Positions 10,823-43,140 of a DNA stretch of 64,000 nt are shown here, one piece after another. The position numbers were made by a program, and so were the translations under genes. Positions within the stretch are counted from its first letter, which is position 1; each line of letters starts with the position of its first letter. The notes beneath the pieces are model-generated. The model was not told the origin of the DNA and did no database searches. It worked only from the letters and a program-made list of their open reading frames with translations. Where the stretch lies: positions 157,218 through 221,217 of IMG/VR virus record IMGVR_UViG_3300035181_000471; one strand, 5' to 3'.

Positions 10823-11728
10823 ATGGCTACTCTATCCCGCACCCAAGCACAGACCGCTCAGCTAGGTCAGATCCTAAAGACCGCCGCTGGCCGTCAGAAA
10901 CTTGCCGCCGCTCTCGGACCTTCGCTCCGTAGACGCCGCGACTATATGTCCATCGCTCGTAAGGCCCTCATGGTTGAAACACTACCTGATGGCGCACTAC
11001 CAATCTACGACAAGGAATTCGATGAAACTGGTCGTTCCTTCGTTGAAGCATTCGTAGTAGGTGAGCAGGGTGGCGACATCGTGAAGTTGGCTAACCCCCT
11101 TCGCGTAACCGTCCCCACCTTCGAAATCGCCTCCAACCCAATGATTCCTATCACTCAGATCAAGGAGCGTAGATTCGACATCGTTTCTCGCGCCCTAAAT
11201 CTAGCAAAGGCTGAAATTGGCGCTGCTGAAGATGGTTTCGTGTTCAACCTCTTCGATACGATTGCTACTGCTGCCAACGGCAAGGCTACCAGCGATCCTA
11301 TCTACAATGTGAACTACCCCCTATCTGGTAGCATCACTCCTGATGCTATGGCCGATCTATTCGGACAGGTCCAGAGACATGACAACTCCGTTGCCTATGT
11401 ATTCGTCAATCCCCGCGATTACACTGACTTCCTCAAGTGGCATGACTCCACCCTAGACCGTGAGACCCAGAGACACCTACTCAAGACTGGTATCATGGGC
11501 TACCTCTGGGGCGCAACCGTCCTACAGAGCAGAAAAGTGGGCTACGGCTCAGTTTATGTCCTAGCTGACGCTGAGTTCCTAGGCGTAATTCCTGAGAGAG
11601 TTCCTCTCACAGTGCTTTCTGCTGATCGCCCTGACCTCCGTCAGATCGGTTTCAGCGTCTTCGAAATCGCTGGATTCCTCGTCTTCAACCCCTCTGGCGT
11701 TCAGAAGATGATCGTAACTCGTCCCTAA
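10823..11728 (+). CDS. major capsid protein (HK97 fold)
   Basis: RDYMSIARKALMVETLPDGALPIYD, VPTFEIASNPMIPITQIKERRFDIV...AEDG, GIMGYLWGATV, and C-terminal GFSVFEIAGFLVFNPSGV. Strong RBS and a downstream terminator. Confidence 0.9.
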   Translation: MATLSRTQAQTAQLGQILKTAAGRQKLAAALGPSLRRRRDYMSIARKALMVETLPDGALPIYDKEFDETGRSFVEAFVVGEQGGDIVKLANPLRVTVPTFEIASNPMIPITQIKERRFDIVSRALNLAKAEIGAAEDGFVFNLFDTIATAANGKATSDPIYNVNYPLSGSITPDAMADLFGQVQRHDNSVAYVFVNPRDYTDFLKWHDSTLDRETQRHLLKTGIMGYLWGATVLQSRKVGYGSVYVLADAEFLGVIPERVPLTVLSADRPDLRQIGFSVFEIAGFLVFNPSGVQKMIVTRP

Positions 11729-16368: not shown

Positions 16369-16983
16369 ATGGCGTCACCTGATGTGGGGATTTACGGGAT
16401 AGAGAATACGATAACTGACAAATGGTATATCGGATCTTCGGTTGAACTTAGTAAGAGGTTCAGTAGGCATCTATGGGAGTTGAGGTCTGGTAGACACCAC
16501 TCCGACAAGCTTCAAAGATCATTCGATAAGCATGGTGTTAAGGCATTTGATTTCAAGTTACTAATGGTCTGCTCCAAAGAGGATCTTGAGTTCTATGAGT
16601 CGAGAGCAATCAAGGCTTATAGGGGGTTTACCGATGGCTATAATGTCGCGGCTGAGGCTAAGGGGGGATTTATGCGAGGTCGTAATTGGCCCGAAGCTAC
16701 CAAGGCCGCTAGGATTGAAGAGATGAAGACGCGCAGAATGACAGAGGAACAAAAGACAAAAATCTCTGAGCTTAAAAAGGCTGAGTGGTCTAACCCAGAA
16801 ATTCACGAAGCTAGATCAGCGAGTATGCGTAAGCCCAAGAGTAAAGAGGGTGCCGCTAACATTGCCGCCGCCTCATTGAAACGCTTGCGTGACCCAGATC
16901 CGGCTCAAGTTGAAGCTAGGCGTCAGAACTTACTTAAGGGCTGGGAAACCAGGAGAAATAATAAAAGACAAGGGAGTCTTTAA
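16369..16983 (+). mobile_element. free-standing GIY-YIG homing endonuclease
   Basis: GIYGIEN...WYIGSS..LSKRFSRH...LQRSFDKHG..AF...E...GYN, followed by a basic NUMOD-like C-terminus. Confidence 0.88.
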
Positions 16984-23247: not shown

Positions 23248-23844
23248 ATGTACGAACTTAAACCAGGACATATCCTCTTAGCTGAGAAAACTAGAGGATG
23301 GAAACTCTCTAACTTCTTCCCATTTGCAATTCGACTTATCACTGGCAACAAAATCACTCATGTTGCCATAGTAGAGTCTTGTGATTTAAATTCTGTCTCC
23401 TACTGGGACGCCAACTCTGGTAAGGGAGTAAAATGTTCTCTAGTTCCCAACATGGAAAATTCAAAAGAAGGCGGTCTACTACTAGCCAACGATATGGTTG
23501 TAACTAAGGTCGCGGAGCTTCCACTTATTGATAGCATTCATGTTAGTGCTATTATAAATGAACTTCATTTGCTTGAAGGCTCTAAGTATAATTATGCCAG
23601 TATTCTTACATTAATGAAAGACCACATTCTAAGACAATTCTACACTCTACCTACCACAAAACCAGATTCAAGTTTTGGTAGAAAGTTCACTTGCTCTCAG
23701 CTTGTGACCCACCTTCTTTTGAAGGCCGGATTCCCTTTCTCCAGGCTATTTACGACCGTGACTTACCCAGCCCTAGTAGAGCCAGATAATTTCACAACCG
23801 CTCCATTCGTGGTTATTCCCCTCTCTGAATTAAAGAGGGGTTAG
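23248..23844 (+). CDS. permuted papain-like (YiiX/NlpC-P60) amidase/peptidase
   Basis: LKPGHILL...THVAIV...G.KYNY...FTCSQLV...VEPDN. His precedes Cys, the permuted NlpC/P60 order. Confidence 0.8.
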   Translation: MYELKPGHILLAEKTRGWKLSNFFPFAIRLITGNKITHVAIVESCDLNSVSYWDANSGKGVKCSLVPNMENSKEGGLLLANDMVVTKVAELPLIDSIHVSAIINELHLLEGSKYNYASILTLMKDHILRQFYTLPTTKPDSSFGRKFTCSQLVTHLLLKAGFPFSRLFTTVTYPALVEPDNFTTAPFVVIPLSELKRG

Positions 23845-26800
23845 CACGATTGAGTATAGCGAGGGTTCATTGGCGATGATAGCCCATGCCGTTCCAGCTA
23901 CATTCCCCCAATCAGAGACATAAGAAACTTGATCAGGAAGCAGGGAGTAGGCCCAACCATAATCTGGCATTCTATTGGGTAGGATTCCATTGTTAATCGT
24001 AACAATGGTGCTACTGTTTGATCCCAGCTTTCTGGCTAACAGTTCATATTGGAATGTGCCCTCTGACCAAGGATACGGGGATACTCCTGGGTATCCTCTG
24101 TCTGGTAGGTAGGGGACAAAGCCAGTTACAAGACCCACCGTCATTCTGAAGGCAAGAGCGTTAATGGATGCGGCTGTAGCTTTGGCAGTCTCTCCAGCGG
24201 CCAGTAAGAACATGGCTCCCCAAGTGTTTAAGTCCAGTGCATCAGCCGTATCTGGTGTTCCGTTGAACCCCTGGTAAAAACGCTCGGCATCTGCATTCCA
24301 AAGTTCTGCTACAATGGCTGTTTTCAGGCTGTTAGCTTCCGTGGTGTAAGAAGACACTCCTGTTACATGACCACAAGCCTGAAGAGCAAAATAGCAATCA
24401 ATGTTATGCTCGGTTGAGAACCAAGCAATAGGAGCGTTAGCGTAAACATCATTAGTGTAAACACCCCTGCCACCCTTAATCAATTGGTGGGGACCGACTG
24501 TAGCTTTGTCCTGTAGGAGTCTGTCTACACCCGCACGAGCAGCAGTAGTGGCCGCAGTTGCAAACTGTCCTTCAGGCATTAGATGAGCGTAAAGAAGGAG
24601 AGCGTAGCAACACCAAGCGTGAGCGCCAGTCCTATAGTAAGGATCAACACTTAACCCAGTAGTTGCATCAAAGCTGAAATACCACTCCTTAGAGGTTGAA
24701 TCTTGCGCTTTGATGAGCCATTCAGCGAGGAAGTCTGGTGTGTTAGGGTCTTGAACTTTGTAAGCCAATGATGCAATCAAGGCAACTGCCTGATCGTAAG
24801 CGTAGCATCGGTTACTCAGAGAGGCATACGCAGAATCGGTTGGAGGAATAATGTAGCTTCTAACCAAACCGCCATGATTTCTAGTGATCTCTGCGCGACT
24901 TCCAGGTGTTCCTGAAGCGGCTACGAGCTTTGCCGTGTAATCACCATCTAGGTAAGTCCAGGGTCTATTTCCGGTAGACCAAGTTTGATTGGTCAATGCT
25001 GGTACGGTGTCGATGTAGTATTCGATGTCCGTCTTTTTCCAAAGTTCAACTGCGTAATTTGGGTCGATAGATGCGGTGTAATCAGTGGTGGCAACCAAAG
25101 TATAAACAAAGTTACCCGTGCCAGTCCATTTGAGGGTTCCAGTGCCAGTGCTTTGAGCCAGAGTGACGGTAGCTCCGCTTAATGTGTAATCGGTCACTGA
25201 AGCCGTGCCACCAGTCGGAGTTGGTATAAAGCTAGTTCTAACTGTACCAAGCTCCACTTGAGGGTGACTAAATCTAATGGTTCCAGTTCCAGCCGCTACA
25301 GTGCCAATACCACAACGCAAGGTTGTAGCACCACTAGTTGCTCCAATTGTTAGTATTGTAGTAAGTATCCCAGTAGTTAAAGTTCCTGCTGCTGTTCCAG
25401 ATGGATTAGCTGGGCAAACAGGGTAAGTTATTGTGCCACTGGGGAGGGCACCACCAAGAACTTCCTGGGCAGTCAAACCACCAGAAACCGCCTCGACTAA
25501 CATGGAAAAACAGTAAGAAGTATTTGCATTCAGTGTGACTGTCTGGCTAAGGTAAGGTCTCTGCGCCGTAGCCGTTTGAGTGTAGGCTGTTCCAGGTCCA
25601 CCCAAAGTAGAGGCACCAGGAGTGGAAGTTCCAGTCGCAGTTGGTTGAGTCCATCCAGTTGGGGCCGCGCCTCCTCCCGTTAATAAAGAGTTCCAGAAGC
25701 TATTGGTTCTTGAAGTGGGGAGGAGCGGAATAGTCCCCTGCCAATCCGTGCGAGTTAGGGTACTGATTGTTGGAGATTGACTTGTTAACCCACCTAATGC
25801 CGTAAGGGTAAACGAAGTGCCGGAGCCACTAATAACTTCGTTTGTAAAGGATAGTGGCTGACTGGTTCCTTCTCCGAATTTCAGAAGCTTTGCAACTTTG
25901 TATCCAGCAGAGGCGTTAGCTATCGACCAATGCCCACTACCATCTAGCACGGAGTAGTAAGGTAGGGTAGGGTATTCCACATTAGCCACAATATCAAATG
26001 CAAGAACTCGGTAAAGTGGATAGTCGGTTACTACAACGCCTGAAACAGAACCAGCAATGGGGCCAGTGTAAGCGTCAGAGTAGCTACCTGAAAAAGATAC
26101 GGACCCTGTAAATGGAGCCGTGTAGTTAGGTGCGGTCCAATTACCTCTACCGGCAAAACTATTTGGAGTTGTGTGAGTGTAGGAAATGTCGTAACCTGGA
26201 GTTGCATTCAGAGCTTTTGTCTGGTTCAAGATCCACTTTCGTTCTTGGTAGAACCCGTTCCAGTTGATCAGGTCAGACAGGTCAGTTGAAGCGTAGTAGT
26301 TGCTGAAGTCTGCGTAAGCCTGATCCTGAACGAAGTCCAAGTGAAGAAAGACATTAGCTTCAATGTAAGAACCCTCTTCAGGTACAAACGATACGGTGAC
26401 TCTACCAGAACAGTATTGAATGGCCTTAGGCTCTAAGCGAGAGTGAGGGTAGATGGTAGTCGTGCCAAACTCATTAGCGTCCACAATGGCTTCATTCACA
26501 ATGATTCCAGTCAGGCTAGTGTCACCAGTCATATAACCAGCAACCGTTACAGTTAGATTATTACCAACGAAGCCAGAGAAGGTGATAGAGTCTCCGATCT
26601 TTACTCCGTCTTCCGGCCAAGATCCCAAGGAACGGATGATGGTTTTGGTGGAAGCATCAAAAGTTAAATTGCCAGTATCCAAGACTCTTGTTGGGGAGAA
26701 GTTGTCTAGCAGGGCATTCATGTCACCCTGGATGAACGACATCCATACAGTAAAGGGATTAGTTGACTGATCGAATATCGTCAAGCTAGTGGCTGAGGTT

Positions 26801-27078
26801 AGAATGACAGACTCTCTTGGGAACTCAATGGTGGCTCCGCGATTATCGCCTCTGCCCTCAGTGGCCCAGGAAGCCATCTGGAGGGGATCTAGAACCCCAT
26901 TAATATAGTGCTTTCCATCGAAGCTAAAACCAGTTAACCCTAGAGTTGGGTTGAAAAACGCATCGTTGTCTTCTACACGGATTACACAGGAAGCCGTGGC
27001 TCCGCTTCCAAACATCTGCTGTAGTCCCGTGGAGTCCAGGGACGAAGAAGAAATCAAGGGTGGAAAAGTGTTAACCAT
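23830..27078 (-). CDS. virion/fibre protein with C-terminal (alpha/alpha)6 glycosidase-like domain
   Basis: 1082 aa with a Thr/Gly-rich carbohydrate-binding-like centre (PQVELGTVRTSFIPT). C-terminus YAYDQAVA...TGAHAW...STEHNID...LWN...RFYQG...ALD.NTW...WSEGT. Has its own AGGAG RBS and late motif. Confidence 0.65.
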   Translation of the reverse strand: MVNTFPPLISSSSLDSTGLQQMFGSGATASCVIRVEDNDAFFNPTLGLTGFSFDGKHYINGVLDPLQMASWATEGRGDNRGATIEFPRESVILTSATSLTIFDQSTNPFTVWMSFIQGDMNALLDNFSPTRVLDTGNLTFDASTKTIIRSLGSWPEDGVKIGDSITFSGFVGNNLTVTVAGYMTGDTSLTGIIVNEAIVDANEFGTTTIYPHSRLEPKAIQYCSGRVTVSFVPEEGSYIEANVFLHLDFVQDQAYADFSNYYASTDLSDLINWNGFYQERKWILNQTKALNATPGYDISYTHTTPNSFAGRGNWTAPNYTAPFTGSVSFSGSYSDAYTGPIAGSVSGVVVTDYPLYRVLAFDIVANVEYPTLPYYSVLDGSGHWSIANASAGYKVAKLLKFGEGTSQPLSFTNEVISGSGTSFTLTALGGLTSQSPTISTLTRTDWQGTIPLLPTSRTNSFWNSLLTGGGAAPTGWTQPTATGTSTPGASTLGGPGTAYTQTATAQRPYLSQTVTLNANTSYCFSMLVEAVSGGLTAQEVLGGALPSGTITYPVCPANPSGTAAGTLTTGILTTILTIGATSGATTLRCGIGTVAAGTGTIRFSHPQVELGTVRTSFIPTPTGGTASVTDYTLSGATVTLAQSTGTGTLKWTGTGNFVYTLVATTDYTASIDPNYAVELWKKTDIEYYIDTVPALTNQTWSTGNRPWTYLDGDYTAKLVAASGTPGSRAEITRNHGGLVRSYIIPPTDSAYASLSNRCYAYDQAVALIASLAYKVQDPNTPDFLAEWLIKAQDSTSKEWYFSFDATTGLSVDPYYRTGAHAWCCYALLLYAHLMPEGQFATAATTAARAGVDRLLQDKATVGPHQLIKGGRGVYTNDVYANAPIAWFSTEHNIDCYFALQACGHVTGVSSYTTEANSLKTAIVAELWNADAERFYQGFNGTPDTADALDLNTWGAMFLLAAGETAKATAASINALAFRMTVGLVTGFVPYLPDRGYPGVSPYPWSEGTFQYELLARKLGSNSSTIVTINNGILPNRMPDYGWAYSLLPDQVSYVSDWGNVAGTAWAIIANEPSLYSIVLTPL

Positions 27079-31046: not shown

Positions 31047-34000
31047 ATGGCCTTAACGCTAACCCCCATCATTCTCTCTGAACAAAACAGAGTTTTTCCT
31101 TTAACCTCAGAATCTACAGGGGTTACGATTCGATTAGCCACTGGCAGTTCCGGTGAAATTGGAACTATCAAGGTGGAGGGGTTCGCTCCTCCTATCGCAA
31201 ATCTGGATTGGAGCATCTATCAGAACCCTTCTTGGGTCACTCTAGAGGTAGATTCCTCCGACCCATCCTTGGTCCATCTCCGCTACACCAACGCTACTCC
31301 AAATCCTCAGGGCCTGCACCAATTCTTCGTAAGTGTTAATGATGGAAACTCTATCATTAGGTACCCTATTGCTATTGATGTCAAGAAGCCTTTCTACCTA
31401 TCCGTGTTATCTCCTAGGACTGACACCATTGATCTAAGAGCTTATGACGCCGGAACTGCTGTCACCACTATTAAAGCATACGGTCAGTCTGATAGGGAGA
31501 TTACCTCTGGTGATGTGTGTTTCCTACCTCCTGTCCTTCCTGACGGTTTGGAGTTCCTAACGGGTCTCGGCAATGAGGCAGTAATCCAGGTAGCCCAACC
31601 TTCCGCTTCCGATGCCTCTGGTGGTGTAAAGGTTGTAACTCCTTACTCCCAGGTCATTCAGGTTCAGGCTTACCAGCCTGGATCAATGTATGACATTCCT
31701 AATGATCCTGTCAGAACTTATACAAAGAACATCACCCTCAATGTCAATACCTCGCTACCCGGAACCTTCGGGTCTGCTGTAACTTGCTCTTACGATGACA
31801 CCAACAATTACTTCGTGCTAAAGGCTGTTACTTCCTTTGCGCTAGGCGAACCTAAGGCACTAACCTACGCTTGGTCTGCCACTGGGACCGGAACCGGAGT
31901 AATGACCGGAGCTACCACTGACACAATGCACTTTGCTCCTAATGTTGCCTCGGGAGCCGTCACTTTCCACCTAGATATTAAGGACGCCAATAACGGCAAT
32001 GTGCTTCTACAGCACTACGATATTGGACCCATGAATGTTTGCAACGCTGGATCTGACGGAGCAACCTGGGAGGCTAACAACGCCTTGAAGCTCTGGGCCA
32101 CTGCTCCAGTTGTATCCGGTGCTGCTGGAGAACCTGTGTCTATCACCATCGCTGGTGATCCTGGTGTAGCTAGCGTGGTAGTTTCGTTCTCTGTGTCAGG
32201 AAGTGGAATCACCGCTCCAGGCAACATCACCCTTCTAAACGGTGTACCACAGACCCTCATCCTCAATGTCCCAGGTGGAGCCACCAACAAACAGAAGTGG
32301 ACCCTTACCGCTAATGGAACATCCGGGTCTGCTACTGGGCAAGCTAGGGTTGTTATTGAAAGTGCCGGAACTCCCGCTCTTTTGGTATCCGCCTCTAATT
32401 CTTCTATCGTCCAGGACACCGGGAGCCTAATCAACCCATCCATAATGACTGCCGCTTACCCAACCCTAAGCACGGTTATTCCAGGCGTGGACTTCTATCT
32501 AGTGAACGCTCCTGCTGGGTTGAAGCTAGGGCAGGACGGGGTTATCACTGGTGGATCGCTTTTCAATACAGTAGATGATTCTGCTTTCTCCTTCAAGGTC
32601 ATGGCTGTCAAGCCTGGGTACTCACCTAGCTACTTGAACATGACCCTAGATGTCACTACAAGTGCAACACCTATCGAGTTCAGCAAGTTCTTCTCTTCTG
32701 TCACCAACACCACGGACAATTCCCCATTCACTCTTTCCTGGCGCTACCCTGAGACTACCGCCTCCCTATGGCTTCAGAAGAATGTAGAAGCTCCCGTAGA
32801 GGTTGTTTCCAATGCCTCTGCTACCGTAGTCGGGGACTCACTATTCTCCCTAACCGGAACTAACTTCTACGGAACCGCTTACTCTACACCTTTGGTTGTC
32901 ATCTCCGACACCGCCGCGAATCTGACCAAGCTCCCTTCTGCAAAGACTTCGGCTGTCATCGACATGAATAACAAGATGACAATCAAGTGGAGTCCTGATC
33001 CAATCAATAACCTCTACAATCTCTACAAGGGATGGTCGATCACCTACAAGAAAAATGGTGGGTCTGTTCTAGCTCTACCTAACGCTGACACCATCATCAC
33101 TGGACTAGAGGACGCCACTGGAACTCTCTCTACCAGAGTGTTCTCCTATCAGATGGGTCCAGACAACATCGCTCTATCCATGAAGGCTTTGTCTGCCAAT
33201 CGTGTAGCCATCGGAGATTCCGATGCTTGGAGTCACCTCCTAGACTTCCCACCTGTCCTAACCCCCACCACCTTCACCCTGGACAAGACTACTGCCAAAC
33301 TAGGGGAGCCTGTAACTATCTCTATGGACAGCGGCTACATTGGTGGATCTGCTTGGAGAGTTCGTTACGCAGAGGGTAAGGCTACTGAGTGGCTACCTAC
33401 CTCTTTGAAGACCAGCACTCATGTCTTTACTACTCCTGGACCTCAGACCATCACTATCGAAATCGAGTCTGATTTCTCCGTAGAAAAGCCTCCTGTCTCT
33501 CTACAAAGAACTATGACTCTTTCTCTATTTGTAGAGGATGAGCAGTTCCTAGTCAGCAATGCTAATGCAAGTGTTATAGGTAACATCGGTATAGGTGGAG
33601 CAGAAGGATTTGAAGTCACCGATTCCTCCTCTGGAACCTACAGCAGAGAGCCTTACGAAGTCATCACTAGATCCATTGTTAAGGATGAGCAAACTCAGGA
33701 AGTCAAACTCCTCATCGCCACTTCCAGAAACAACAACGCCTCCTCTGCTCTAGGAACTATGGCTCTCGATGTCTTCCCAATCCAGGGTAGACCTCATATG
33801 AAGAACCTAGTTCTTCCAGCACTAAACCTAAACGGTAACACTGGGCTTGTTTCTTCTGTAAAGATCGTTTCTGAGTCGCTGCCTGACGCCGTAGTCGGAA
33901 AGCCTATGCCTGAAACCCAGCTTCAGGTATCTGGTGGAACTGCACCTTACGACTGGTATTCCAGCAATCTACCTCAGGGTCTAGTCCTCAACACTGACGG

Positions 34001-37000
34001 CACCCTATCTGGAACCCCAATGCTGATGGGTGTTTACACCATTGACTTCTCTGTCAAGGACTCCACTTCTCCTGCATACATCGACAGCAGAACTCTAGTC
34101 TTCTCTGTAAAGAGCGACATCGCAATCAGCGAGGTTTCTGCTCCTACCGCTAAGGTCGGAACTTTCTACTCTCACACCATCGCTTCCTTGGGTGGCCTAG
34201 CCCCATTCTCTTGGAGACTTGCTAACGGTGAGCTACCAATCGGTCTAAGCATCGAACCTTCTTCTGGTAAGATCCTAGGTCTACCCTGCACCTACAATTC
34301 TACTACTGACTTCACAAAGAACTTCCTCTTCACTCCTGAAGTTACTGACTCCATTGGAGCAAAGGCATCCAAGCAACTCTATATGTCTCTAGCCCCTGCC
34401 GATCTAACACTAGGTAGCATGGATCAGTCGATCATCTACAAGGATGAGGATGCCAAGTTTGCCATCCCTGTTTACGGTGGACAATCCCCTTACCATCTCG
34501 CTTCCTTCACCTCTGATGGAACAATTGGTAGTGATCTGACCCTCAAGACTCCTGAAGTCATTAACGCTGTATCCGAACTAACTCCTAGTCTCCTAGTGAT
34601 CACCACTGGGGACCAGATCTTCAACCCACAGGGAACTCCTGTAGCTGGTGTCTACCCAACTCCTTACAATGTTTCGTTCTCCGTAGATGTTGCTGGTGGA
34701 GTCCCAGGTTACAGACTTTCTATTGACACTTCCAACCCTAGCTTAAACACTCTACCTAACGCTGATATCATCGGTAATGTGGTAACTGGAACTGTCACCG
34801 CAGATGGTCACTACACTGTGAACATCAAGGTTGTGGATTCTGATGGATTCGGAGTCTCTTACTCCAAGGTTATCAGAGTAACCACCAACGACAACAGCAC
34901 TGAAGCCTACTCCACCACTCTTGAGTTTGTAGGTGTAAAGAAGAACGGTTCTAACAACACTGCCACCTGGACCTTCAGAAAACTATCCGCTCTACCCAAC
35001 ATCCTGAAGGATGTCCCCTACAAGAACCTCGCTGACACCGCTGAATTCTATGGTCTAGCCCTCTGGGACAACGATCTAAATCAGCCAGCACAGGCTCTAG
35101 CTCTCCCAATCACCGCTGGTAAGCTAAGCACCTCCGTACAGGGTGGTGCAGAGGGTCAGTATGCCGCTCTAGGTATCTCAGCTTTTACACCTTCTTGGAC
35201 CATCACCACTGAAGGAACTGGCGTATTCAATGTCGCTGGGTCTCTACCAATCGGCTACGGAACCTCTGGAACTGCCTCTGGACCTTACGCATTCTTCCTC
35301 TTTGCAGACAGCACCGCAGGGGCAGGAATCCCAGTCATAAACCAGAAGATCTCCAAGGTCACTGACCCTACCTTCGGAATCCTAAGCGACTACCAGATTG
35401 GAACCATCACCCTCTACTCTGTAACTGGTGACCCTCTCTACTCTAAGTCCATGTTCATCTACTGCTCTGACTCTGGAGACAACACTACTTCTACTCCTGT
35501 AGTCGAGGTCACTTCTACCAGAACTCAAACCATTGAAGGCGACATCTACGATCCTCTCTCTGCCACCTACAATAGCTCTGAGGCTCGTCACTTTGAGTAT
35601 CCACTAACTGCCGCCTCTGGTGCCGCTCCCTATGTCTTCACCGTTAAAGATGGTTCCACCCTACCTGGAGCTTCAATCGGCGTAGCTAACGGGGTTCCTA
35701 CACTAATGGTCCCCAGCACTTCACCAATATACACTGGAACCACCTCAGCCTCTTATGTGGCTTATGTAGCCGCTACAGATAAGAATGGCATTGTGTCTCA
35801 GACAGCCACCATCAATGTCAACTATGTCCCCAAGACCGCCTCTACTAACCCAGTTCAGATTGTGGGTGTCACCTATCTCCAGGACATCGCAGTCACCGAT
35901 CCGACCTTCCGTGGTTATACTGGTGCCGATCTAGGTGTTCTAGACATGATGATGTGGGCTAACCAGGATGTCACTTGGAGCCTACCTCCTTCCGAGAAGG
36001 CAGATCACGAATCTCATGGAATCGTGTTCATCACCAAGCCTGACAACTCCTTCCAGATTGCTGGAACTCCCAATGTTGCTCAGAGATACATTTTCAATGT
36101 CACCGCAACCGCTGTGGGCGCTGGGTCTGATACTCGCGTGGTCTACCTAGACATCGTTGATCCTATCGTCACTATCCAAGGACCAACCTCTCCTCTAACC
36201 CTAAACGCCAAGTATAACTATGCCACCAACCACTCTGTAATGAAGGTGAGCATCGAAGGGTACAAGGTCGGAACTTGCCCTGTGGTTCTAGTCACTAACT
36301 TGGGAACCTTGAACCCCGTTCCAACCAATGTCAACATTACCAGTGACATGGGAATGGGTCATCTCGGAAACCCTGCTTACGCTCAGAAATGGGATGCCTA
36401 CTATGACTTCTCTACCACCGTATCCGGTGCTGGAGTTCTAACCACTACTGGTGGGGTTGCAACCACTCCTTACCCCTTCTCTGCTGCCGCTACAACTCTC
36501 GTGGCAAAGGGAATTGTCCAGCCTGTAGTCCATGTGTCTGAATACGCTACCACCTTCCTACCTGCTCCTCCTCTCACCATCACTGGCGGAACTGCACCTT
36601 ACACCTACACCGTATCCTCCATTTCAAACCCAACTAACTTCACTATCTCAGGTGGGCAGCTTGCCATGCTAATGAATAGCGTATCTCCGACTAACCAGCC
36701 TGGAGCTTGTGATGTCACCTACACCGTAACCGATAGCTCTACTCCTACTCAGACTGTTGTCTCTACCGCAGGAAATGTCAGTGTCATCGTAGATGCTGAA
36801 AGCTACATCTCTGCTGCCTTCCCCACAAAGGAATGGGTCTACACCGCAGGAGCATCCACCTTCCCACTCTATCAGGTCATCCAACCTAAGTTGGGTCACA
36901 AGCCTTATCAGTGGACCATCACTAGCGTTGATTTCTCTGCTATTAGCGGGGGCATGACCGGACTAGTCCACAAGTCTAGCACCAACAGCATTCTATCCAT

Positions 37001-37232
37001 CAACACCAGCACTTCGGACTATAGCATCAAGGACTTCACCAGCACCGATGTTCTATACGAAACCACTCCTGGAACTTGGGTAGCCACTCCAACTGGATTG
37101 CTATACTCCCACGCTTGGTCCTCTATCGTCCCAACCCCAGGCCGCTATGTAATCCCCATTGGCGTCACCATCACCGATGCCAAGGGAATCTCAGTCGCCG
37201 GAACCACTTCTGTTACCCTGATTGTTCCTTAA
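31047..37232 (+). CDS. giant Ig-like (putative Ig/He_PIG, PKD) repeat virion fibre protein
   Basis: 2061 aa with repeated GGxAPYxW...LPxGLxL...G.LSGTP units and a PKD-like STHVFTTPG. Confidence 0.75.
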   Translation: MALTLTPIILSEQNRVFPLTSESTGVTIRLATGSSGEIGTIKVEGFAPPIANLDWSIYQNPSWVTLEVDSSDPSLVHLRYTNATPNPQGLHQFFVSVNDGNSIIRYPIAIDVKKPFYLSVLSPRTDTIDLRAYDAGTAVTTIKAYGQSDREITSGDVCFLPPVLPDGLEFLTGLGNEAVIQVAQPSASDASGGVKVVTPYSQVIQVQAYQPGSMYDIPNDPVRTYTKNITLNVNTSLPGTFGSAVTCSYDDTNNYFVLKAVTSFALGEPKALTYAWSATGTGTGVMTGATTDTMHFAPNVASGAVTFHLDIKDANNGNVLLQHYDIGPMNVCNAGSDGATWEANNALKLWATAPVVSGAAGEPVSITIAGDPGVASVVVSFSVSGSGITAPGNITLLNGVPQTLILNVPGGATNKQKWTLTANGTSGSATGQARVVIESAGTPALLVSASNSSIVQDTGSLINPSIMTAAYPTLSTVIPGVDFYLVNAPAGLKLGQDGVITGGSLFNTVDDSAFSFKVMAVKPGYSPSYLNMTLDVTTSATPIEFSKFFSSVTNTTDNSPFTLSWRYPETTASLWLQKNVEAPVEVVSNASATVVGDSLFSLTGTNFYGTAYSTPLVVISDTAANLTKLPSAKTSAVIDMNNKMTIKWSPDPINNLYNLYKGWSITYKKNGGSVLALPNADTIITGLEDATGTLSTRVFSYQMGPDNIALSMKALSANRVAIGDSDAWSHLLDFPPVLTPTTFTLDKTTAKLGEPVTISMDSGYIGGSAWRVRYAEGKATEWLPTSLKTSTHVFTTPGPQTITIEIESDFSVEKPPVSLQRTMTLSLFVEDEQFLVSNANASVIGNIGIGGAEGFEVTDSSSGTYSREPYEVITRSIVKDEQTQEVKLLIATSRNNNASSALGTMALDVFPIQGRPHMKNLVLPALNLNGNTGLVSSVKIVSESLPDAVVGKPMPETQLQVSGGTAPYDWYSSNLPQGLVLNTDGTLSGTPMLMGVYTIDFSVKDSTSPAYIDSRTLVFSVKSDIAISEVSAPTAKVGTFYSHTIASLGGLAPFSWRLANGELPIGLSIEPSSGKILGLPCTYNSTTDFTKNFLFTPEVTDSIGAKASKQLYMSLAPADLTLGSMDQSIIYKDEDAKFAIPVYGGQSPYHLASFTSDGTIGSDLTLKTPEVINAVSELTPSLLVITTGDQIFNPQGTPVAGVYPTPYNVSFSVDVAGGVPGYRLSIDTSNPSLNTLPNADIIGNVVTGTVTADGHYTVNIKVVDSDGFGVSYSKVIRVTTNDNSTEAYSTTLEFVGVKKNGSNNTATWTFRKLSALPNILKDVPYKNLADTAEFYGLALWDNDLNQPAQALALPITAGKLSTSVQGGAEGQYAALGISAFTPSWTITTEGTGVFNVAGSLPIGYGTSGTASGPYAFFLFADSTAGAGIPVINQKISKVTDPTFGILSDYQIGTITLYSVTGDPLYSKSMFIYCSDSGDNTTSTPVVEVTSTRTQTIEGDIYDPLSATYNSSEARHFEYPLTAASGAAPYVFTVKDGSTLPGASIGVANGVPTLMVPSTSPIYTGTTSASYVAYVAATDKNGIVSQTATINVNYVPKTASTNPVQIVGVTYLQDIAVTDPTFRGYTGADLGVLDMMMWANQDVTWSLPPSEKADHESHGIVFITKPDNSFQIAGTPNVAQRYIFNVTATAVGAGSDTRVVYLDIVDPIVTIQGPTSPLTLNAKYNYATNHSVMKVSIEGYKVGTCPVVLVTNLGTLNPVPTNVNITSDMGMGHLGNPAYAQKWDAYYDFSTTVSGAGVLTTTGGVATTPYPFSAAATTLVAKGIVQPVVHVSEYATTFLPAPPLTITGGTAPYTYTVSSISNPTNFTISGGQLAMLMNSVSPTNQPGACDVTYTVTDSSTPTQTVVSTAGNVSVIVDAESYISAAFPTKEWVYTAGASTFPLYQVIQPKLGHKPYQWTITSVDFSAISGGMTGLVHKSSTNSILSINTSTSDYSIKDFTSTDVLYETTPGTWVATPTGLLYSHAWSSIVPTPGRYVIPIGVTITDAKGISVAGTTSVTLIVP

Positions 37233-37272: not shown

Positions 37273-40200
37273 ATGGCCGCTCAAACTATTAAACTTGTAA
37301 CCACCGGGGGCCAAGCCCCCTACACTTATTCTATCATTCATGATAACCTAACTACTCTCCCTTTGCCTTCCTATCCTCAGCCTGGAAATGCTAGTTACGC
37401 TACAGTTAGCTTCAATATGGGTAGCTCTGAAATCGTAGTTGACGCCACCAATGTCAACCCCGGAACCTACAAGCTCCACCTAAATATCACTGACTCCACA
37501 ACCCCTGTAGCCAAGATCACTACCAAAGTTATCACCATCAAGGTCTTGAACATTACCAAATTTGCCATCCTAAACGAATCTGAATCAGTCATTCCAGGTA
37601 GCTTCCCCTACCAAGGCTATGTCTTCCTAGAAGCCTCTGGAGCCACTGGAGCCGTGACTTGGAGCATTATTGATTCCATGACCACCCTCCCTGGAGCCGC
37701 AATCACCACTGACGGTTTCGGTAATTTAGTAGTGGCCTACTCAACTAGCCAGTATGGTGACTTCACTTTAGGACTCCAGGCTAAGGACAGTTTCAAGACC
37801 GTAACTCGCACCCTCACTATTAGTGTGATCGCTCCATCTGCCTACAAGTTAGTAGACGGTCAGGTCGAAGTAGTTTTTAGTGACGCAGGATACACCGAAG
37901 GAACTCACACCTTCAGTGTCAATGTAACTGACTCTCAATCCTCTCCCGCCTCCACCGCTCGCTCCTTCGAATACCTACTTCAGCCAGCTATCTCTACAAT
38001 CCATGTCCCCCAATCCTTCGTAAAATACTGGCACATGGACGATACCAATGAGGTCTATTTCCCCATCACTGGAACCTTATCAGGGCTTTCCATCAAGGAT
38101 TCTAGCGGAACCTTCTCCAATGGAGTGACCTATAGCGTAGAGGGTGCCGCCAGAAGAATCAAGTTCTCAGGGCCTCCAACTGTAGCCGAGAACTCCCAGC
38201 TTGTCATCCCAATTAACTTGCAGTTTAGTAACACTATCGTTGCCTCTGTGTCCAAAACTTTCACAGTGCCAGCTTTCGATGGTGCCTATGACGAGTCATC
38301 TATCTCCAGCAGTTGCTACACTAGACCTCTAGTGTCGGGTGAGTTCTTCTCTCTAAACCCCCAGAAACCTTACTACAACTCCCCCAGCATTGAGCGTCAC
38401 ACTTGGACCGCCAGAGTAGCGTCTGGGAACACCCTCCCTCAGGGCTTGAGCTTGGATGCCAACACCGGACTTATCTACGGAAAGCTTCTAGCTACGACTC
38501 CTCAGACTACATCTATCGAGTTCGTGGACCCCAACACAAAGCTCGTTAAGGGAATCATTGTCATTCACTTTGACATCGTAGCTTACGATTTCTCCTTGGT
38601 TGAAACCCTCTCGGCGGGTGCCGTGTCTTTCCCCTACACCGGATTGATCTCCACCACCTCTAATTCCGATCTGCTAGACGCCACTCTTTACTCTGGCACT
38701 CTCCCAAGTGGCCTAACCTTGGGCGTGTCAAGAACTCTAGCAACTGGTATTCTAACTTTCAACCACACACTATCCACTATCGCTAGAGCGGGTGGAAGTT
38801 GGGTTGATGATGCCGTTCACATTGGTAGCCAGCTTGTGTTCTCTGGCTTCACTACCACCGCAAACAACAAAACCTTCACCGTTACAGATGTCACTCCCTC
38901 CACTATTACCGTAGCTGAAAATGTTACCCTAGCTACTGAAACTGGTGTGGTTACTGCTAAGACTAAGGCTGTTATCTCTGGAACTCCAACTGAGTCCGGT
39001 CACTTCGACCTCTGGATTAAGGTGAGAAATGTGGATGGTAAAATCGGGCTCCTATACAAGAGGTTTGAAGTATCCTACTCCACTCCGCTCTCGGTTATCA
39101 CCACCTCACTCCCAACTCTAACCAATCAGCCTTATGCTGGAGTTCTAAGCGCAGTAGGTGGAACTGGCGTGTTCACTTGGAGCCTAAATTCCGGCTCCCC
39201 CGCACTCCCCGCTGGCATTACCCTATCCTCTTCAGGACTCCTAAGCGGAACTTACGCAGGGTCATCCTACAACCAGAACATCGTAGTGAAAGTTGTGGAC
39301 TCTAAGGGTGCATCGGCTACCGCCACTTTGAACTTCGCATTCAGCAACACTCTATCGGTCTCTACCGCAAGCATCCCCAAGATCATTCGTGGAGAGTACT
39401 ACTCTTTCACCTTGAAGGCATACGGCGGAACCGGAACCTACTCTAACTGGACTGTCACCGCTGGTGGGAGCTTACCATCAGGCATCACCTTAAACTCCGC
39501 TGGCGTCCTAAGCGGATTCGTAGCTACTGGAACTGCTTACACTCCAGCCAACTTGACTTTCACCGTTACCGACTCCTCTGCCGCCACCTCCAATAAGGTT
39601 CTAGCAGTAGGTGTGGCTGACGCCGCATCTGTTCTAGCTATTGACACTTCGGGAATCGGGGTGATCAGCAAGGGTAGCAACTATCAAGGTGTCATGAAGG
39701 TTTCCATCGGAGCCTCCACCGCTGTCGGCCCTTTCCACTGGGAAATCGCTCCTGGATCGCCTAACCAGCTTCCCACTGGCTTAGTTCTATCTGCCAACAC
39801 CACTGACTCCGGCATGACTGCCTTCATCTCTGGAAAGTGCATCTTAGCCCTAAGCAACTACTCGGTAAAAATCAGAGTAGTTGATGCAAATGGTCTATCT
39901 GCCACCACTTACATTCTTCTTTCCTCTGTTCCAAGTGTCACTATCTCCACCAAGGCACTATCTCAGGGTAAGGTAACTGAGGCATACACTCAGACCATTC
40001 TAGGTGACAGCGCCAATCTACCGATCACCTTCAGCCTAGACACCCCTCCTACCCTTCCAGCAGGTATGTCATTCAACTCCTCTGGAGTCCTATCTGGGAC
40101 ACCCTCTGGTGTGTATAACAACACCATCAATGTGAGACTCACCGATGCTCTCAATGACTATGTTGTTAAGCCTCTCCTCCTAGTTGTGAAGAACTCTAAT

Positions 40201-40923
40201 CTAGTCCTAACCACCACAAGCATCCCCACCATTTCAAGCGGCAAAGATTGGTCATACACTCTAACCGCCACTGGTAGCGCCGGAGGCTTTAAGTGGAGTA
40301 TCTCTCCTGATTCTACCGTTGGGTTACCTTCCAATGTGCAGTTGAATGAAACAACTGGTGTACTTTCCACTACTGGAACGAACTCTCTAGGAGTTCGTTC
40401 CATTATCTTCAGAGTCACAGACGCAGACGGAACTCACACCGACAAGGCCCTCTCTATGACTGTGGTTGCCAGCCAAGCCATCACCGCTGGACCTGACTAC
40501 ATCAACGGAACCACTCATGGCTATCTCGGTTATGTGAGACAGGACATCGCTTCCTTAACTTCTCAGATTCTACCTAGAAGCTCTAAGTCCTTCTACGCAA
40601 TTCTAACCAATTTTGCATCCACTTCCTTGACCCAGATTTCAGTATCAACTTCAGACCCAGCAGTCACCGCTGTAGCCGAAGCCATGACTGCTTCCGAGGT
40701 TCTAATTAACATCACTCAAGTCCCTGCCAGCACTCTAGGGGACAACACCTTCACCCTCACAATTGTTGATAATGCCACACCAATATCAGCAGTTTTGAAG
40801 TATAAAGTAATTGAAGGAAGAGATGTTAAGGTAACTCTACTAGATGGGTCTACACTTCCTGTCCAGTCCTTCACAGCCGAAGGTTGGATTGGAAGACCCC
40901 AGCCCTCACCAACCACCGCATAA
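37273..40923 (+). CDS. putative-Ig (He_PIG) repeat virion fibre protein
   Basis: 1216 aa with many LPxG[LI][TS]L...G.LSG repeats. Confidence 0.78.
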   Translation: MAAQTIKLVTTGGQAPYTYSIIHDNLTTLPLPSYPQPGNASYATVSFNMGSSEIVVDATNVNPGTYKLHLNITDSTTPVAKITTKVITIKVLNITKFAILNESESVIPGSFPYQGYVFLEASGATGAVTWSIIDSMTTLPGAAITTDGFGNLVVAYSTSQYGDFTLGLQAKDSFKTVTRTLTISVIAPSAYKLVDGQVEVVFSDAGYTEGTHTFSVNVTDSQSSPASTARSFEYLLQPAISTIHVPQSFVKYWHMDDTNEVYFPITGTLSGLSIKDSSGTFSNGVTYSVEGAARRIKFSGPPTVAENSQLVIPINLQFSNTIVASVSKTFTVPAFDGAYDESSISSSCYTRPLVSGEFFSLNPQKPYYNSPSIERHTWTARVASGNTLPQGLSLDANTGLIYGKLLATTPQTTSIEFVDPNTKLVKGIIVIHFDIVAYDFSLVETLSAGAVSFPYTGLISTTSNSDLLDATLYSGTLPSGLTLGVSRTLATGILTFNHTLSTIARAGGSWVDDAVHIGSQLVFSGFTTTANNKTFTVTDVTPSTITVAENVTLATETGVVTAKTKAVISGTPTESGHFDLWIKVRNVDGKIGLLYKRFEVSYSTPLSVITTSLPTLTNQPYAGVLSAVGGTGVFTWSLNSGSPALPAGITLSSSGLLSGTYAGSSYNQNIVVKVVDSKGASATATLNFAFSNTLSVSTASIPKIIRGEYYSFTLKAYGGTGTYSNWTVTAGGSLPSGITLNSAGVLSGFVATGTAYTPANLTFTVTDSSAATSNKVLAVGVADAASVLAIDTSGIGVISKGSNYQGVMKVSIGASTAVGPFHWEIAPGSPNQLPTGLVLSANTTDSGMTAFISGKCILALSNYSVKIRVVDANGLSATTYILLSSVPSVTISTKALSQGKVTEAYTQTILGDSANLPITFSLDTPPTLPAGMSFNSSGVLSGTPSGVYNNTINVRLTDALNDYVVKPLLLVVKNSNLVLTTTSIPTISSGKDWSYTLTATGSAGGFKWSISPDSTVGLPSNVQLNETTGVLSTTGTNSLGVRSIIFRVTDADGTHTDKALSMTVVASQAITAGPDYINGTTHGYLGYVRQDIASLTSQILPRSSKSFYAILTNFASTSLTQISVSTSDPAVTAVAEAMTASEVLINITQVPASTLGDNTFTLTIVDNATPISAVLKYKVIEGRDVKVTLLDGSTLPVQSFTAEGWIGRPQPSPTTA

Positions 40924-40932
40924 AGGTAAATC

Positions 40933-43140
40933 ATGATCGCACCTCAAGTTAATTTACAGGGACAGACAATTTACCAGTATTACCTTCCTCTCCTAGAGGG
41001 TGAAGCGGGGCAAGTCTATGTGAACAACGGCACCCTAGGGCAGATCAATTTCGATTATTACAATGGGATTACTCCTAGTGTTGCAGACGCTCTAAGTAGC
41101 GGAGTTATTAGAATTTCAAGTGATTCAGATGCACTCCACCAGGGGCGCATAAAGCTAGCCACTTATGGCTCCGGTGTGAGGCTTGAATACACAGGAGCTA
41201 AGTGGGCGGATGTAGCCCAGAGTCTACCTCCCCAATTCAATCTCAATATTGAAGAGGAGGACATCGTTTGGTACGCCCCCGGCAGCGGCTTTGATCTTTC
41301 TGCCATCTCTCTGCCTCTCGTAGTTCCTCCCAATACTCCTACTGGTCCTACCTACGAGTATTCGGGTGGAAGCAAGCTACAGATCAAGGTGTTCCCTCTA
41401 GTGTCCCCTGAGGTGGCTTCAGTCAGTCCTACTGTTCTAGCTGGCGGAGCTACCCAGGACATCACTGTCACCCTTAAGAGGCCCTTACACCCAACTCAGA
41501 CTCCTACTGTGGCCTTCCAGTCTGCCTCGGGTCTTTTAACCTTTAACGGGGCTCCCAGAGTCAATAAAAACGCCTCGGGTGGGATCGTGTCTTGGACCAT
41601 TTCTGTCACCGCCTCTTCTTCCGCCGCTTCCTCTGTCGCAGTCACAATGACCGCCCAGGATGCCGCACTACACTACCTAAGCGGAGATGTGATAGTAACT
41701 CAGGCTTACAATTACACACCCACTCCAATCAATCTTCCAGCCATGTCGATTAGCAAAGCTATCGCCACTCAGCCGCTAGCTATTACTTCCGTGCAAGCTG
41801 TTGGTCCAGACTCCGCTTATGGAGTGGCCGCTACCGATGGGTGGACTGCTACCGCTAGCGGTCAGCAAGCATTCGCCGGTAAGATCGTTGTAACCGCTAC
41901 TGTGTCCTCCCCTGCTAATAACTTCAGTAGCGGATCAGTTATTGCGAAAGCAACCGGAACCACGGCCCGTATCACTCTAGGAACTGCTTCACTTAAGGGT
42001 AGTCCCTATGTCGGAAACAACTCCTCCGGCACAACCCTTTACTACCAGGACTACTACATGGTCGTGGATACCGGACTTCTACTCACTAGAGACCAGTCTT
42101 ATGACATCGGATTCTCTGCTGTAGCTGATGGAGTTACCACTACTTCCTGGATTAATAATGTCTTTGTAAATCAGAACCTAACTAAGCAGTTCACTTCCTA
42201 CAATATGACTGTGAACTTCAGTGGAGCAGCCAGTTACACCGCAGTTGGTATCCCAGCATCTACATGGGTGGCGTCTTCAACTGGAACTTCTGGTGCAGTT
42301 CCCTCCTTGAATGGCGGAGCTTCTTTTGGAATCCAAGAACTCTGGGGCTACAAGTCAGCAGGAGCTTCTTTTGATTCTATCTTGAAGCAAGAGCTTCGTG
42401 TCACTGGCCCTGGAAAGACTGATGAACTCGTCAAGTCTGTTACTGCCAGAGACCCCAATGGCTACCTGGAGATCGCAAATGTTGACACCTCTGCGTGGAC
42501 CGCTGGCTATTACGATTTTGTGTTCAGAATCTACTCTAAGGCTACCACTTACTCCTTCGATGGAGTAAACCAGGGTTACATCGACACTCCCGCTCAGTCG
42601 TTTAGAGTCGCCCACTCCACTGGTGGTGGAGGAGGGTGTTTCGCTGGCAAAACCTATGTCATGACCGTTGATGGTCCCAAGACCATTGATAGCATCAAGG
42701 TTGACGCACTAGTGATGTCGGCCTCTGATGTTGACTTCCAGGCTGGCAACTTCACTCTAACTCCCAAGAAGACTTTGGCAGTTCTAGTCCACGATGATAG
42801 AGCTTACGAAACCGTCAATCTAAACGGAATCCTAACCACTCCAGAGCATCCTTGGGCCACCTCTGATCGTGAATTCACTGAAGTCTCCGAGATGACGGAC
42901 GCCTCCCTAGTAATGTCCGTAGATATCCTACACAATGAAACATACCCTGTTTCAGCGATTCAGATTCCCGGCCCAGACCTAGAAACCGTATACAACCTAA
43001 CTATCGAGGATACTCATACTTACTTGGTTGCCCCCAGTATATTCGGACCTTGGTATCTTGTCCACAATGCCAAGAAGATCGAGTATAAGACACTATGGGA
43101 TATGAACAACCCCGAAGTTAATATCAATAACACGGTGTAA
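40933..43140 (+). CDS. fibre/receptor-binding-like protein with C-terminal Hint domain
   Basis: Beta-rich body, then GGGGG-CFAGKT...TTPEHPW...TVYNLTIEDTHTYLV...LVHN-AKK. Confidence 0.8.
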   Translation: MIAPQVNLQGQTIYQYYLPLLEGEAGQVYVNNGTLGQINFDYYNGITPSVADALSSGVIRISSDSDALHQGRIKLATYGSGVRLEYTGAKWADVAQSLPPQFNLNIEEEDIVWYAPGSGFDLSAISLPLVVPPNTPTGPTYEYSGGSKLQIKVFPLVSPEVASVSPTVLAGGATQDITVTLKRPLHPTQTPTVAFQSASGLLTFNGAPRVNKNASGGIVSWTISVTASSSAASSVAVTMTAQDAALHYLSGDVIVTQAYNYTPTPINLPAMSISKAIATQPLAITSVQAVGPDSAYGVAATDGWTATASGQQAFAGKIVVTATVSSPANNFSSGSVIAKATGTTARITLGTASLKGSPYVGNNSSGTTLYYQDYYMVVDTGLLLTRDQSYDIGFSAVADGVTTTSWINNVFVNQNLTKQFTSYNMTVNFSGAASYTAVGIPASTWVASSTGTSGAVPSLNGGASFGIQELWGYKSAGASFDSILKQELRVTGPGKTDELVKSVTARDPNGYLEIANVDTSAWTAGYYDFVFRIYSKATTYSFDGVNQGYIDTPAQSFRVAHSTGGGGGCFAGKTYVMTVDGPKTIDSIKVDALVMSASDVDFQAGNFTLTPKKTLAVLVHDDRAYETVNLNGILTTPEHPWATSDREFTEVSEMTDASLVMSVDILHNETYPVSAIQIPGPDLETVYNLTIEDTHTYLVAPSIFGPWYLVHNAKKIEYKTLWDMNNPEVNINNTV
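42637..43068 (+). other. Hint (bacterial intein-like / pretoxin-HINT type) autoprocessing domain
   Basis: Block A CF, block B TxxH (TPEH), block F VYNL and block G HN are all present. No endonuclease insert; the +1 residue is Ala. Confidence 0.88.

Follow-up and report, generated by a model that had tools for sequence, protein, structure and literature searches.

A 221-kb viral contig in IMG/VR (record IMGVR_UViG_3300035181_000471, estimated 77% complete) carries in its last 64 kb the structural module of an uncultivated jumbo myophage. Within the tail and baseplate genes of this stretch (positions 157,218 to 221,217 of the record, 64,000 nucleotides, hereafter the window), one gene encodes a fibre-like protein of 735 aa whose last 172 residues consist of a glycine linker, a 144-aa Hint domain and a short basic tail (Table 1). 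An earlier note on this DNA, made from the nucleotide sequence by a model, had described a fibre protein ending in five glycines, a complete Hint domain and alanine. It had proposed that the protein is either released with an activated, ubiquitin-like poly-Gly terminus that could be ligated to another molecule, or relieved of a Hint that serves as a removable assembly chaperone. Reading the DNA confirmed every element of that anatomy at its position (GGGGG, C1, TPEH, VYNL, HN, the following Ala, the 144-aa Hint and the 23-aa tail). Here we describe a recognisable Hint subfamily that acts as a terminal module on phage tail proteins, and we weigh what such a module may do at the end of a fibre.

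The protein and its Hint domain

An AlphaFold2 (AF2) model built on nine orthologues resolves a conserved N-terminal domain, a proline-rich disordered linker (residues 110-145), a row of immunoglobulin (Ig)-like sandwiches, the Hint domain and a tail. In the orthologue alignment, residues ~430-520 are the most variable and indel-rich part of the Ig-like region. Linker residues 563-566 form a low-confidence hinge (predicted local distance difference test (pLDDT) <50), and the Hint itself (residues 569-712) is modelled with pLDDT 77-93 per 10-residue block. The predicted scissile bond is Gly568-Cys569. After the terminal His-Asn of the Hint come Ala713 (43069-43071), 22 more residues and the stop codon TAA (43138-43140). 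GC content over the Hint (0.44-0.50, against 0.45-0.55 in the gene) reveals no compositional anomaly and therefore no sign of recent foreign origin.

Profile match, fold and the presence of Cys1 and TxxH make the domain a member of the Hint superfamily. The Pfam family PT-HINT (PF07591) matched residues 564-735 (E 3.7e-6) at a borderline 27.7 bits, equal to the cut-off of 27.7; the orthologue P0002 scored 38.9 bits, clearly over it, and a whole-genome Pfam scan also placed PT-HINT above the cut-off. The Hedgehog-type Pfam family Hint (PF01079) gave a weak match only, and relatives of the Hint gave weak matches to Intein_splicing and Hom_end_hint. Searched against the PDB, a profile of three orthologues found its best sequence match among solved structures in 2LWY, a domain of the bacterial intein-like (BIL) type from C. 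thermocellum (E 2e-9); the same profile recovered 4655 proteins at E<=1e-3 among 1.84 billion. Foldseek searches with the Hint model returned target-normalised template modelling (TM) scores of 0.81 for the NpuDnaB intein (4o1r), 0.76 for the BIL domain 2lwy, 0.73 for the NrdJ-1 intein (8ubs) and 0.72 for the Tetrahymena BUBL domain BIL2 (6y75). PHROG and NCBIfam held nothing for the Hint protein. No DNA match to the window was found among GenBank phages, whose proteins matched the Hint protein only weakly (hypothetical proteins of two Ruminococcus phages) and the Hints of two relatives, P0050 and P0011, not at all.

Conservation among orthologues

Exhaustive and local profile searches yielded an orthologue set of nine full-length proteins, which share 29-55% identity in their N-terminal parts and lie in the same gene order throughout (contigs up to 227 kb). 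Residues C569, T636, H639, H711 and N712 are invariant in all nine. The Hint is thus complete, as the earlier note had held, and the machinery for both N- and C-terminal cleavage is under selection. At +1 the orthologues differ freely (A, M, K, M, K, R, K, S and I), so a nucleophile at this position is not under selection; this agrees with the earlier claim that the nucleophile for canonical splicing is missing. Orthologue tails span 4-23 residues and are conserved only in having a basic residue at +1 or +2.

The comparison is less kind to the glycines, which the note had likened to the end of ubiquitin. The -1 residue is G in four orthologues, S in three and A and P in one each (in order G, G, G, G, S, S, A, S, P), and the N-junctions read GGGGG, FGGGG, GTGGG, AWIGG, GGGGS, GGTGS, SIAQA, TGSGS and STLP. 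Because the junction, though rich in Gly and Ser, is not conserved, the poly-Gly run is better understood as a flexible linker with a small -1 residue than as a recognition element; Gly is the commonest -1 residue across the wider Hint clade.

No orthologue without a Hint emerged from protein, viral-contig or metagenome searches, although the sensitivity of these searches was limited. The word-indexed protein search (run both with the entire protein and with an N-terminal profile) scored only the 8000 candidates sharing most words and returned the window protein plus two orthologues; the viral-contig scan returned identical copies only; and the metagenome scan added one further orthologue, identical to P0005, with its Hint present. 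Retention of the Hint is meaningful to the extent that a useless C-terminal appendage could be lost by one stop codon, yet no such loss was seen.

A natural control is provided by an orphan Hint. In the phage encoding the orthologue P0003, the gene directly after it (P0007) encodes a stand-alone 139-aa Hint without its first ten residues, Cys1 included, and with the block B His replaced by Gln, the block F Asn by Ala and the terminal Asn by Asp. It retains the fold motifs, GPWYLVH among them. P0007 shares 48-49% identity with the window and P0002 Hints, against 30% with the Hint of P0003. The P0003 Hint is nearest to that of P0010 (47%), and the N-terminal part of P0003 is nearest to the window protein (55%). 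The simplest reading of these identities is that the C-terminal cassette was swapped in the P0003 phage and the old Hint stranded as an orphan. Since the unfused copy has lost its catalytic residues, these seem to be maintained only where there is something to cleave, and the decay of P0007 supports the view that fused copies are kept for autoprocessing. The orphan also resembles the displaced cassettes found in polymorphic-toxin loci.

A subfamily of terminal Hints

Among Hints from the 150 best hits, the motif GP[WFY]xxLVHN occurs in 52/70 domains lying within 30 residues of the C-terminus versus 2/182 long-tail or tandem domains. A tree of 231 domains joins the short-tail Hints in one group (41/43 rows, Shimodaira-Hasegawa-like approximate likelihood ratio test (SH-aLRT) 93), with 3 label changes versus 38 in shuffles. 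The 43 non-redundant members have tails of 4-23 residues (median 10); K or R stands at +1 or +2 in 38 of them, and C, S or T at +1 in nine. Tail length and sequence vary even inside one 90% cluster (P0053-P0164). Short, predicted disordered and fast-evolving, the tail goes with the Hint; given its variation within this cluster, it is part of the module and not of the host protein. By these sequence characters, the window Hint is a member of a distinct subfamily marked by GP[WFY]xxLVHN, K/R at +1/+2 and a tail of 4-23 aa. The assignment of the tail to the module and the conserved basic residue had no place in the earlier note.

The host proteins of the subfamily are mutually unrelated and carry the Hint at the extreme C-terminus. 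P0050 (L010, 10001-11737) is encoded after gpI, in the fibre position of gpH, by a P2-like prophage in an Acidobacteria metagenome-assembled genome; its N-terminus matches tail-fibre PHROGs, ten glycines precede Cys1, and it is followed by a ResIII helicase gene and by no gpG-type fibre-chaperone gene. Three other hosts (P0016, P0020 and P0023) combine Big_7/Big_13 Ig arrays with a Hint, P0023 doing so in a myophage tail module, and P0155 lies within another phage structural block. Viral clusters in the ESM Atlas join FNIII-A_GpJ or Phage-tail_3 to a Hint (131 and 70 members). In the literature searched, whose coverage is incomplete, we found no description of phage tail fibres that end in a Hint. 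The idea of a phage-only subfamily was rejected, since P0080 has ordinary bacterial genes as neighbours and P0047 is on a 1.29-Mb contig.

Elsewhere among the hits, several proteins (P0009, P0014, P0015, P0019, P0021, P0068 and others) consist of three to five complete Hints in direct tandem, with junctions such as HN-K-GG-CF; these form a large separate tree group of 98 domains. P0034 (361 aa), a close relative of the P0017 Hint, ends in two tandem Hints (GPWYWVHN-KIQYPTG-CVPAGT...AHN) and a 14-aa tail.

Genomic setting

Location in a tail and baseplate module together with an elongated, repetitive architecture, in the model a string of Ig-like domains, makes the fibre label of the earlier note reasonable for the Hint protein. 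A natural fusion adds to its plausibility. P0013 (1984 aa) unites a homologue of the He_PIG protein encoded directly upstream of the Hint gene (27% identity over 1300 aa, E 3e-71) with a Hint-protein homologue, the join lying at the N-terminal domain end of the latter. On account of this fusion, the 1216-aa He_PIG protein and the Hint protein are probably parts of one fibre, with the Hint at its far end.

The 203-aa open reading frame (ORF) downstream has a homologue of 190-213 aa as the next gene in all orthologous phages, and no match in Pfam, PHROG or NCBIfam; it may be no part of the Hint mechanism. Stop read-through from the Hint gene into this ORF was considered, the two being in the same frame with only TAA CGG between them in the window and in L002 (43138-43146), and was dropped because three other orthologous contigs have the ORF overlapping or in a different frame.

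The remaining structural genes are listed in Table 1. Among them, the sheath protein is unusually large, and the enoyl-CoA hydratase-like ORF converges on the minus-strand tail-fibre gene and overlaps its end. In the phage of the orthologue P0006, an IS605 OrfB/Cas12f-like TnpB gene (L007, 3104-4165, minus strand) lies between two He_PIG giant genes; the window has no such gene at the same place.

Table 1. Features of the window, with the Hint gene and its parts in the middle block (positions are those of the window)
Feature	Position	Strand	Basis or remark
Large tail sheath protein, 1296 aa	431-4321	+	PHROG sheath match confined to last ~330 residues
Prohead protease	7880-8743		
Major head protein	10823-11728		
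GIY-YIG-type homing endonuclease ORF	16369-16983	+	phrog_314, E 1.7e-30; free-standing within structural block
Enoyl-CoA hydratase-like ORF	23248-23844	+	phrog_1128
Tail-fibre gene	23830-27078	-	Sole large minus-strand gene of structural block
He_PIG Ig-repeat giant	31047-37232		ORF; He_PIG found on orthologues
He_PIG Ig-array protein, 1216 aa, directly upstream of Hint gene	37273-40923	+	Pfam He_PIG
Whole gene, 735-aa fibre-like virion protein with C-terminal Hint module	40933-43140	+	ORF list; nine orthologues in syntenic tail/baseplate modules
Conserved N-terminal domain, ~residues 1-110, probable attachment end	40933-41262	+	AF2 segments; YYLPLLE start kept in alignment
Ig-like beta-sandwich domains, three to four predicted, residues 147-560	41371-42612	+	AF2 secondary structure; Foldseek matches to Ig/FnIII strings
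GGGGG linker, G564-G568	42622-42636	+	Codons ggt ggt gga gga ggg
Hint domain, 144 aa, C569-N712	42637-43068	+	PT-HINT; 2LWY profile match; intein/BIL structural matches
Cys569 (tgt)	42637-42639	+	DNA reading; block A = CFAGKTYV
Block B, TTPEH	42835-42849	+	T636-P-E-H639 = 42838-42849
Block F, VYNLTIEDTHTYLV	42988-43029	+	V686-Y-N-L from 42988
Block G, GPWYLVHN	43045-43068	+	H711-N712 = 43063-43068
Tail, 23 aa (AKKIEYKTLWDMNNPEVNINNTV)	43069-43137	+	Predicted disordered, pLDDT 35-52
Downstream ORF, 203 aa	43144-43755	+	Synteny
Baseplate protein, 250 aa	43755-44507		
Baseplate_J protein, 1348 aa	44517-48563		

Relation to known self-processing domains

A-type BIL domains are reportedly the subject of Amitai et al. 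2003 and Dassa et al. 2004. The window Hint shares with them the mini Hint fold, Cys1, TxxH and a C-terminal His-Asn without a conserved +1 nucleophile, as well as a place in variable, non-housekeeping proteins of extracellular type; canonical splicing is excluded as the selected function because +1 holds no conserved nucleophile, which places the domain with the BIL-type Hints. Domains of this type keep His-Asn, lack the +1 nucleophile and are found in variable, non-housekeeping proteins, where autocleavage at the N- and C-junctions is the expected chemistry and mainly N- and C-cleaved products are formed (PMC7765530, PMC7664689). Judged by the features set out in PMC7765530, the window domain behaves like an A-type member, its sequence having been compared with the single solved member 2LWY (C. 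thermocellum BIL4), which is a match in both sequence and structure. It differs in being strictly terminal, with only 4-23 residues after it, in sitting on phage tail and fibre proteins, and in GP[WFY]xxLVHN plus K/R at +1/+2, which separates its subfamily from long-tail and tandem Hints.

Other relatives fit less well. Class 1 inteins have the residues of the window Hint plus a +1 nucleophile, and they sit between conserved exteins at a conserved site of host proteins that also exist without them. The window has Ala713 at +1, the would-be C-extein in the orthologues is a stretch of 4-23 unconserved residues, and the searches described above, limited in sensitivity, gave no Hint-less orthologue. 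Hedgehog Hog domains share the G-CF junction, the N-S acyl shift and the logic of a C-terminal autoprocessing domain that releases the N-terminal part, but have no terminal His-Asn and use a sterol-recognition region that supplies cholesterol as nucleophile, whereas HN is invariant in the orthologues and no folded region follows the window Hint. PT-HINT domains, the best Pfam match, resemble it further in that many hits of this type have a Gly-rich junction and a K after HN; the window protein, however, is accompanied by neither a toxin domain nor an immunity gene, and the genes downstream are syntenic members of the baseplate module. The window Hint belongs to none of these three kinds: inteins, Hedgehog-type Hog domains or toxin-releasing PT-HINTs.

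Two systems matter for function. Peptidase_S74 also occupies the extreme C-terminus of fibres and spikes, is found on N-terminal parts unrelated to one another (in endosialidases, tailspikes and T5 pb1-type fibres) and would follow the same logic, that of a domain used before or during assembly which then removes itself autocatalytically. The folds are unrelated and the chemistry differs, a Ser-Lys dyad in a trimer as against a Hint Cys thioester plus Asn cyclisation; Pfam and PHROG gave no Peptidase_S74 (PF13884-type) match in the Hint protein, so the likeness is functional and positional only. BUBL BIL2 of Tetrahymena (6Y75/6TMM) is likewise a BIL-type Hint and offers a precedent in which the N-junction thioester passes to a Lys isopeptide and the N-flank is dispensed onto other proteins without ATP; the domain is activated by Zn (PMC8616854). 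By analogy, it is the nearest known support for the ligation proposed earlier. It is flanked by ubiquitin-like domains, whereas the window Hint stands between an Ig-like sandwich and a 23-aa peptide, with a Gly run that is not conserved.

Proposed mechanism and alternatives

We consider that the module is probably, if by no means assuredly, an autonomous BIL-type, self-excising C-terminal module on the Ig-like fibre of a jumbo myophage. Cys569 would attack the Gly568 carbonyl in an N-S acyl shift helped by T636 and H639, giving a thioester, and Asn712 would cyclise with the help of His711, cutting off the tail. Lacking a +1 nucleophile, the domain would not undergo canonical trans-esterification, and water would mainly resolve the thioester. 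The expected products are a mature protein of ~568 aa ending in STGGGGG and a free Hint. From the position of the module and its recurrence, and by analogy with Peptidase_S74, the Hint may act as a transient, self-removing C-terminal cap or as a folding or assembly aid for the distal fibre end. The removable assembly chaperone, one of the options in the earlier note, is accordingly the version that we favour.

Several observations weigh against this proposal. The N-terminal part models as independent Ig-like sandwiches with no obvious need for a trimerisation chaperone, so the S74 analogy may fail. Simple hydrolysis leaves the conserved basic residue at +1/+2 (38/43) without explanation and gives no reason for keeping C-cleavage of a functionless tail. 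Small bacterial proteins outside phage contexts carry members of the subfamily too, so its role is not fibre-specific, and no close copy of the module was found in cultured GenBank phages. A complex prediction for the last sandwich (residues 415-563) with the Hint and tail (569-735) scored 0.01, which counts neither for nor against a docking cap.

A rival reading is covalent transfer in place of hydrolysis, with an amine attacking the Gly568 thioester, an outcome that we regard as rather unlikely. In cis, the α-amine freed by Asn cyclisation or the ε-amine of the conserved +2 Lys (K714/K715) would join the tail to the fibre, amounting to BIL-type splicing without a nucleophilic side chain. In trans, the thioester would pass to another virion protein, at a Lys or the N-terminus, or to a host-surface nucleophile, in an ATP-free conjugation of the BUBL kind. 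Both BUBL BIL2 and the C. thermocellum BIL domain are among the structural neighbours of the Hint, the former with the isopeptide precedent (PMC8616854); ligation by a C. thermocellum BIL domain without nucleophilic side chains is the subject of Aranko et al. 2013, as cited by PMC7664689. K/R at +1/+2, the one conserved feature after HN, could be the acceptor; HN is strictly kept despite the seemingly functionless tail; and the flexible Gly linker and disordered tail would allow the ends to meet. The tail itself, however, is unconserved, shrinks to 4 aa and varies within a 90% cluster, and being so variable its attachment is hardly the selected outcome. The different module hosts have no conserved neighbour gene in common, and this speaks against a dedicated acceptor. 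Nor is the poly-Gly conserved, and published BIL domains mostly cleave (PMC7664689). That the Hint is kept to generate a reactive thioester at the distal fibre tip and not as a disposable cap, with capture of the fibre C-terminus by an amine or hydroxyl of a virion protein or of the host surface, strikes us as distinctly doubtful; the basic residue after HN would then be an internal acceptor or a catalytic helper.

Three further explanations were weighed. An uncleaved Hint could stay in place as a distal tip domain, for instance a binding or adhesion module of Hint fold, given that the fibre-like protein has no folded domain beyond it and that the catalytically dead P0007 persists as an ORF, as if the fold had a use of its own. 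From a pure binding domain one would expect surface variation and no need of Cys1, TxxH or HN, whereas the residues for both cleavages stay unchanged among the nine divergent orthologues and throughout the subfamily, with catalytic decay only in the unfused P0007; we find an uncleaved tip domain very unlikely. Still less probable is a selfish or degenerating mini-intein near the fibre C-terminus, with the 23-aa tail as a remnant of the C-extein and the +1 nucleophile lost by mutation, even though phage genomes are intein-rich, the structural module also contains a GIY-YIG homing endonuclease ORF, the blocks are intein-like and relatives match Intein_splicing and Hom_end_hint weakly. The 144-aa mini Hint has no endonuclease domain, Hint-less alleles did not turn up in the searches of limited sensitivity described above, and the tail, showing no conservation alongside the host protein, follows a pattern common to Hints on unrelated proteins. 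The tree places the domain with C-terminal cap Hints, apart from the three-stretch endonuclease-bearing inteins, and the Hint was kept over deep divergence though one stop codon would remove a useless domain harmlessly. Hardly credible, finally, is a polymorphic-toxin PT-HINT whose released C-terminal effector would in this case be a short peptide. The best Pfam family, ESM Atlas structural neighbours that combine PT-HINT with nuclease toxins, and the likeness of the orphan after P0003 to displaced toxin-locus cassettes all point that way, but only 4-23 disordered, unconserved residues follow HN, with no toxin domain and no immunity-like gene pattern, and the host is a virion tail component.

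Implications

If ligation proved true, phage tails would have their first reported enzyme-free covalent conjugation step, and capture in trans would provide enzyme-free, ATP-free cross-linking of the tail or covalent, irreversible adsorption to the host, a BUBL-like system in virions. For protein engineering, the module is a compact, naturally terminal candidate for a self-cleaving tag of 144 aa, for thioester generation or tag removal, with an N-junction that tolerates GGGGG, GSGS, IAQA and STLP.

To our knowledge, the self-removing C-terminal domains of fibres and spikes known so far are the S74 intramolecular chaperone and separate chaperone "caps". If the self-excising module that we favour is real, a second, unrelated self-processing fold would stand at the same position, a convergent design in virion assembly with instances on the Ig-like fibre of a jumbo phage, a P2-type fibre, Big_7 arrays and GpJ-type proteins. 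BIL domains, whose biological role has been vague since 2003, would gain a concrete job as well.

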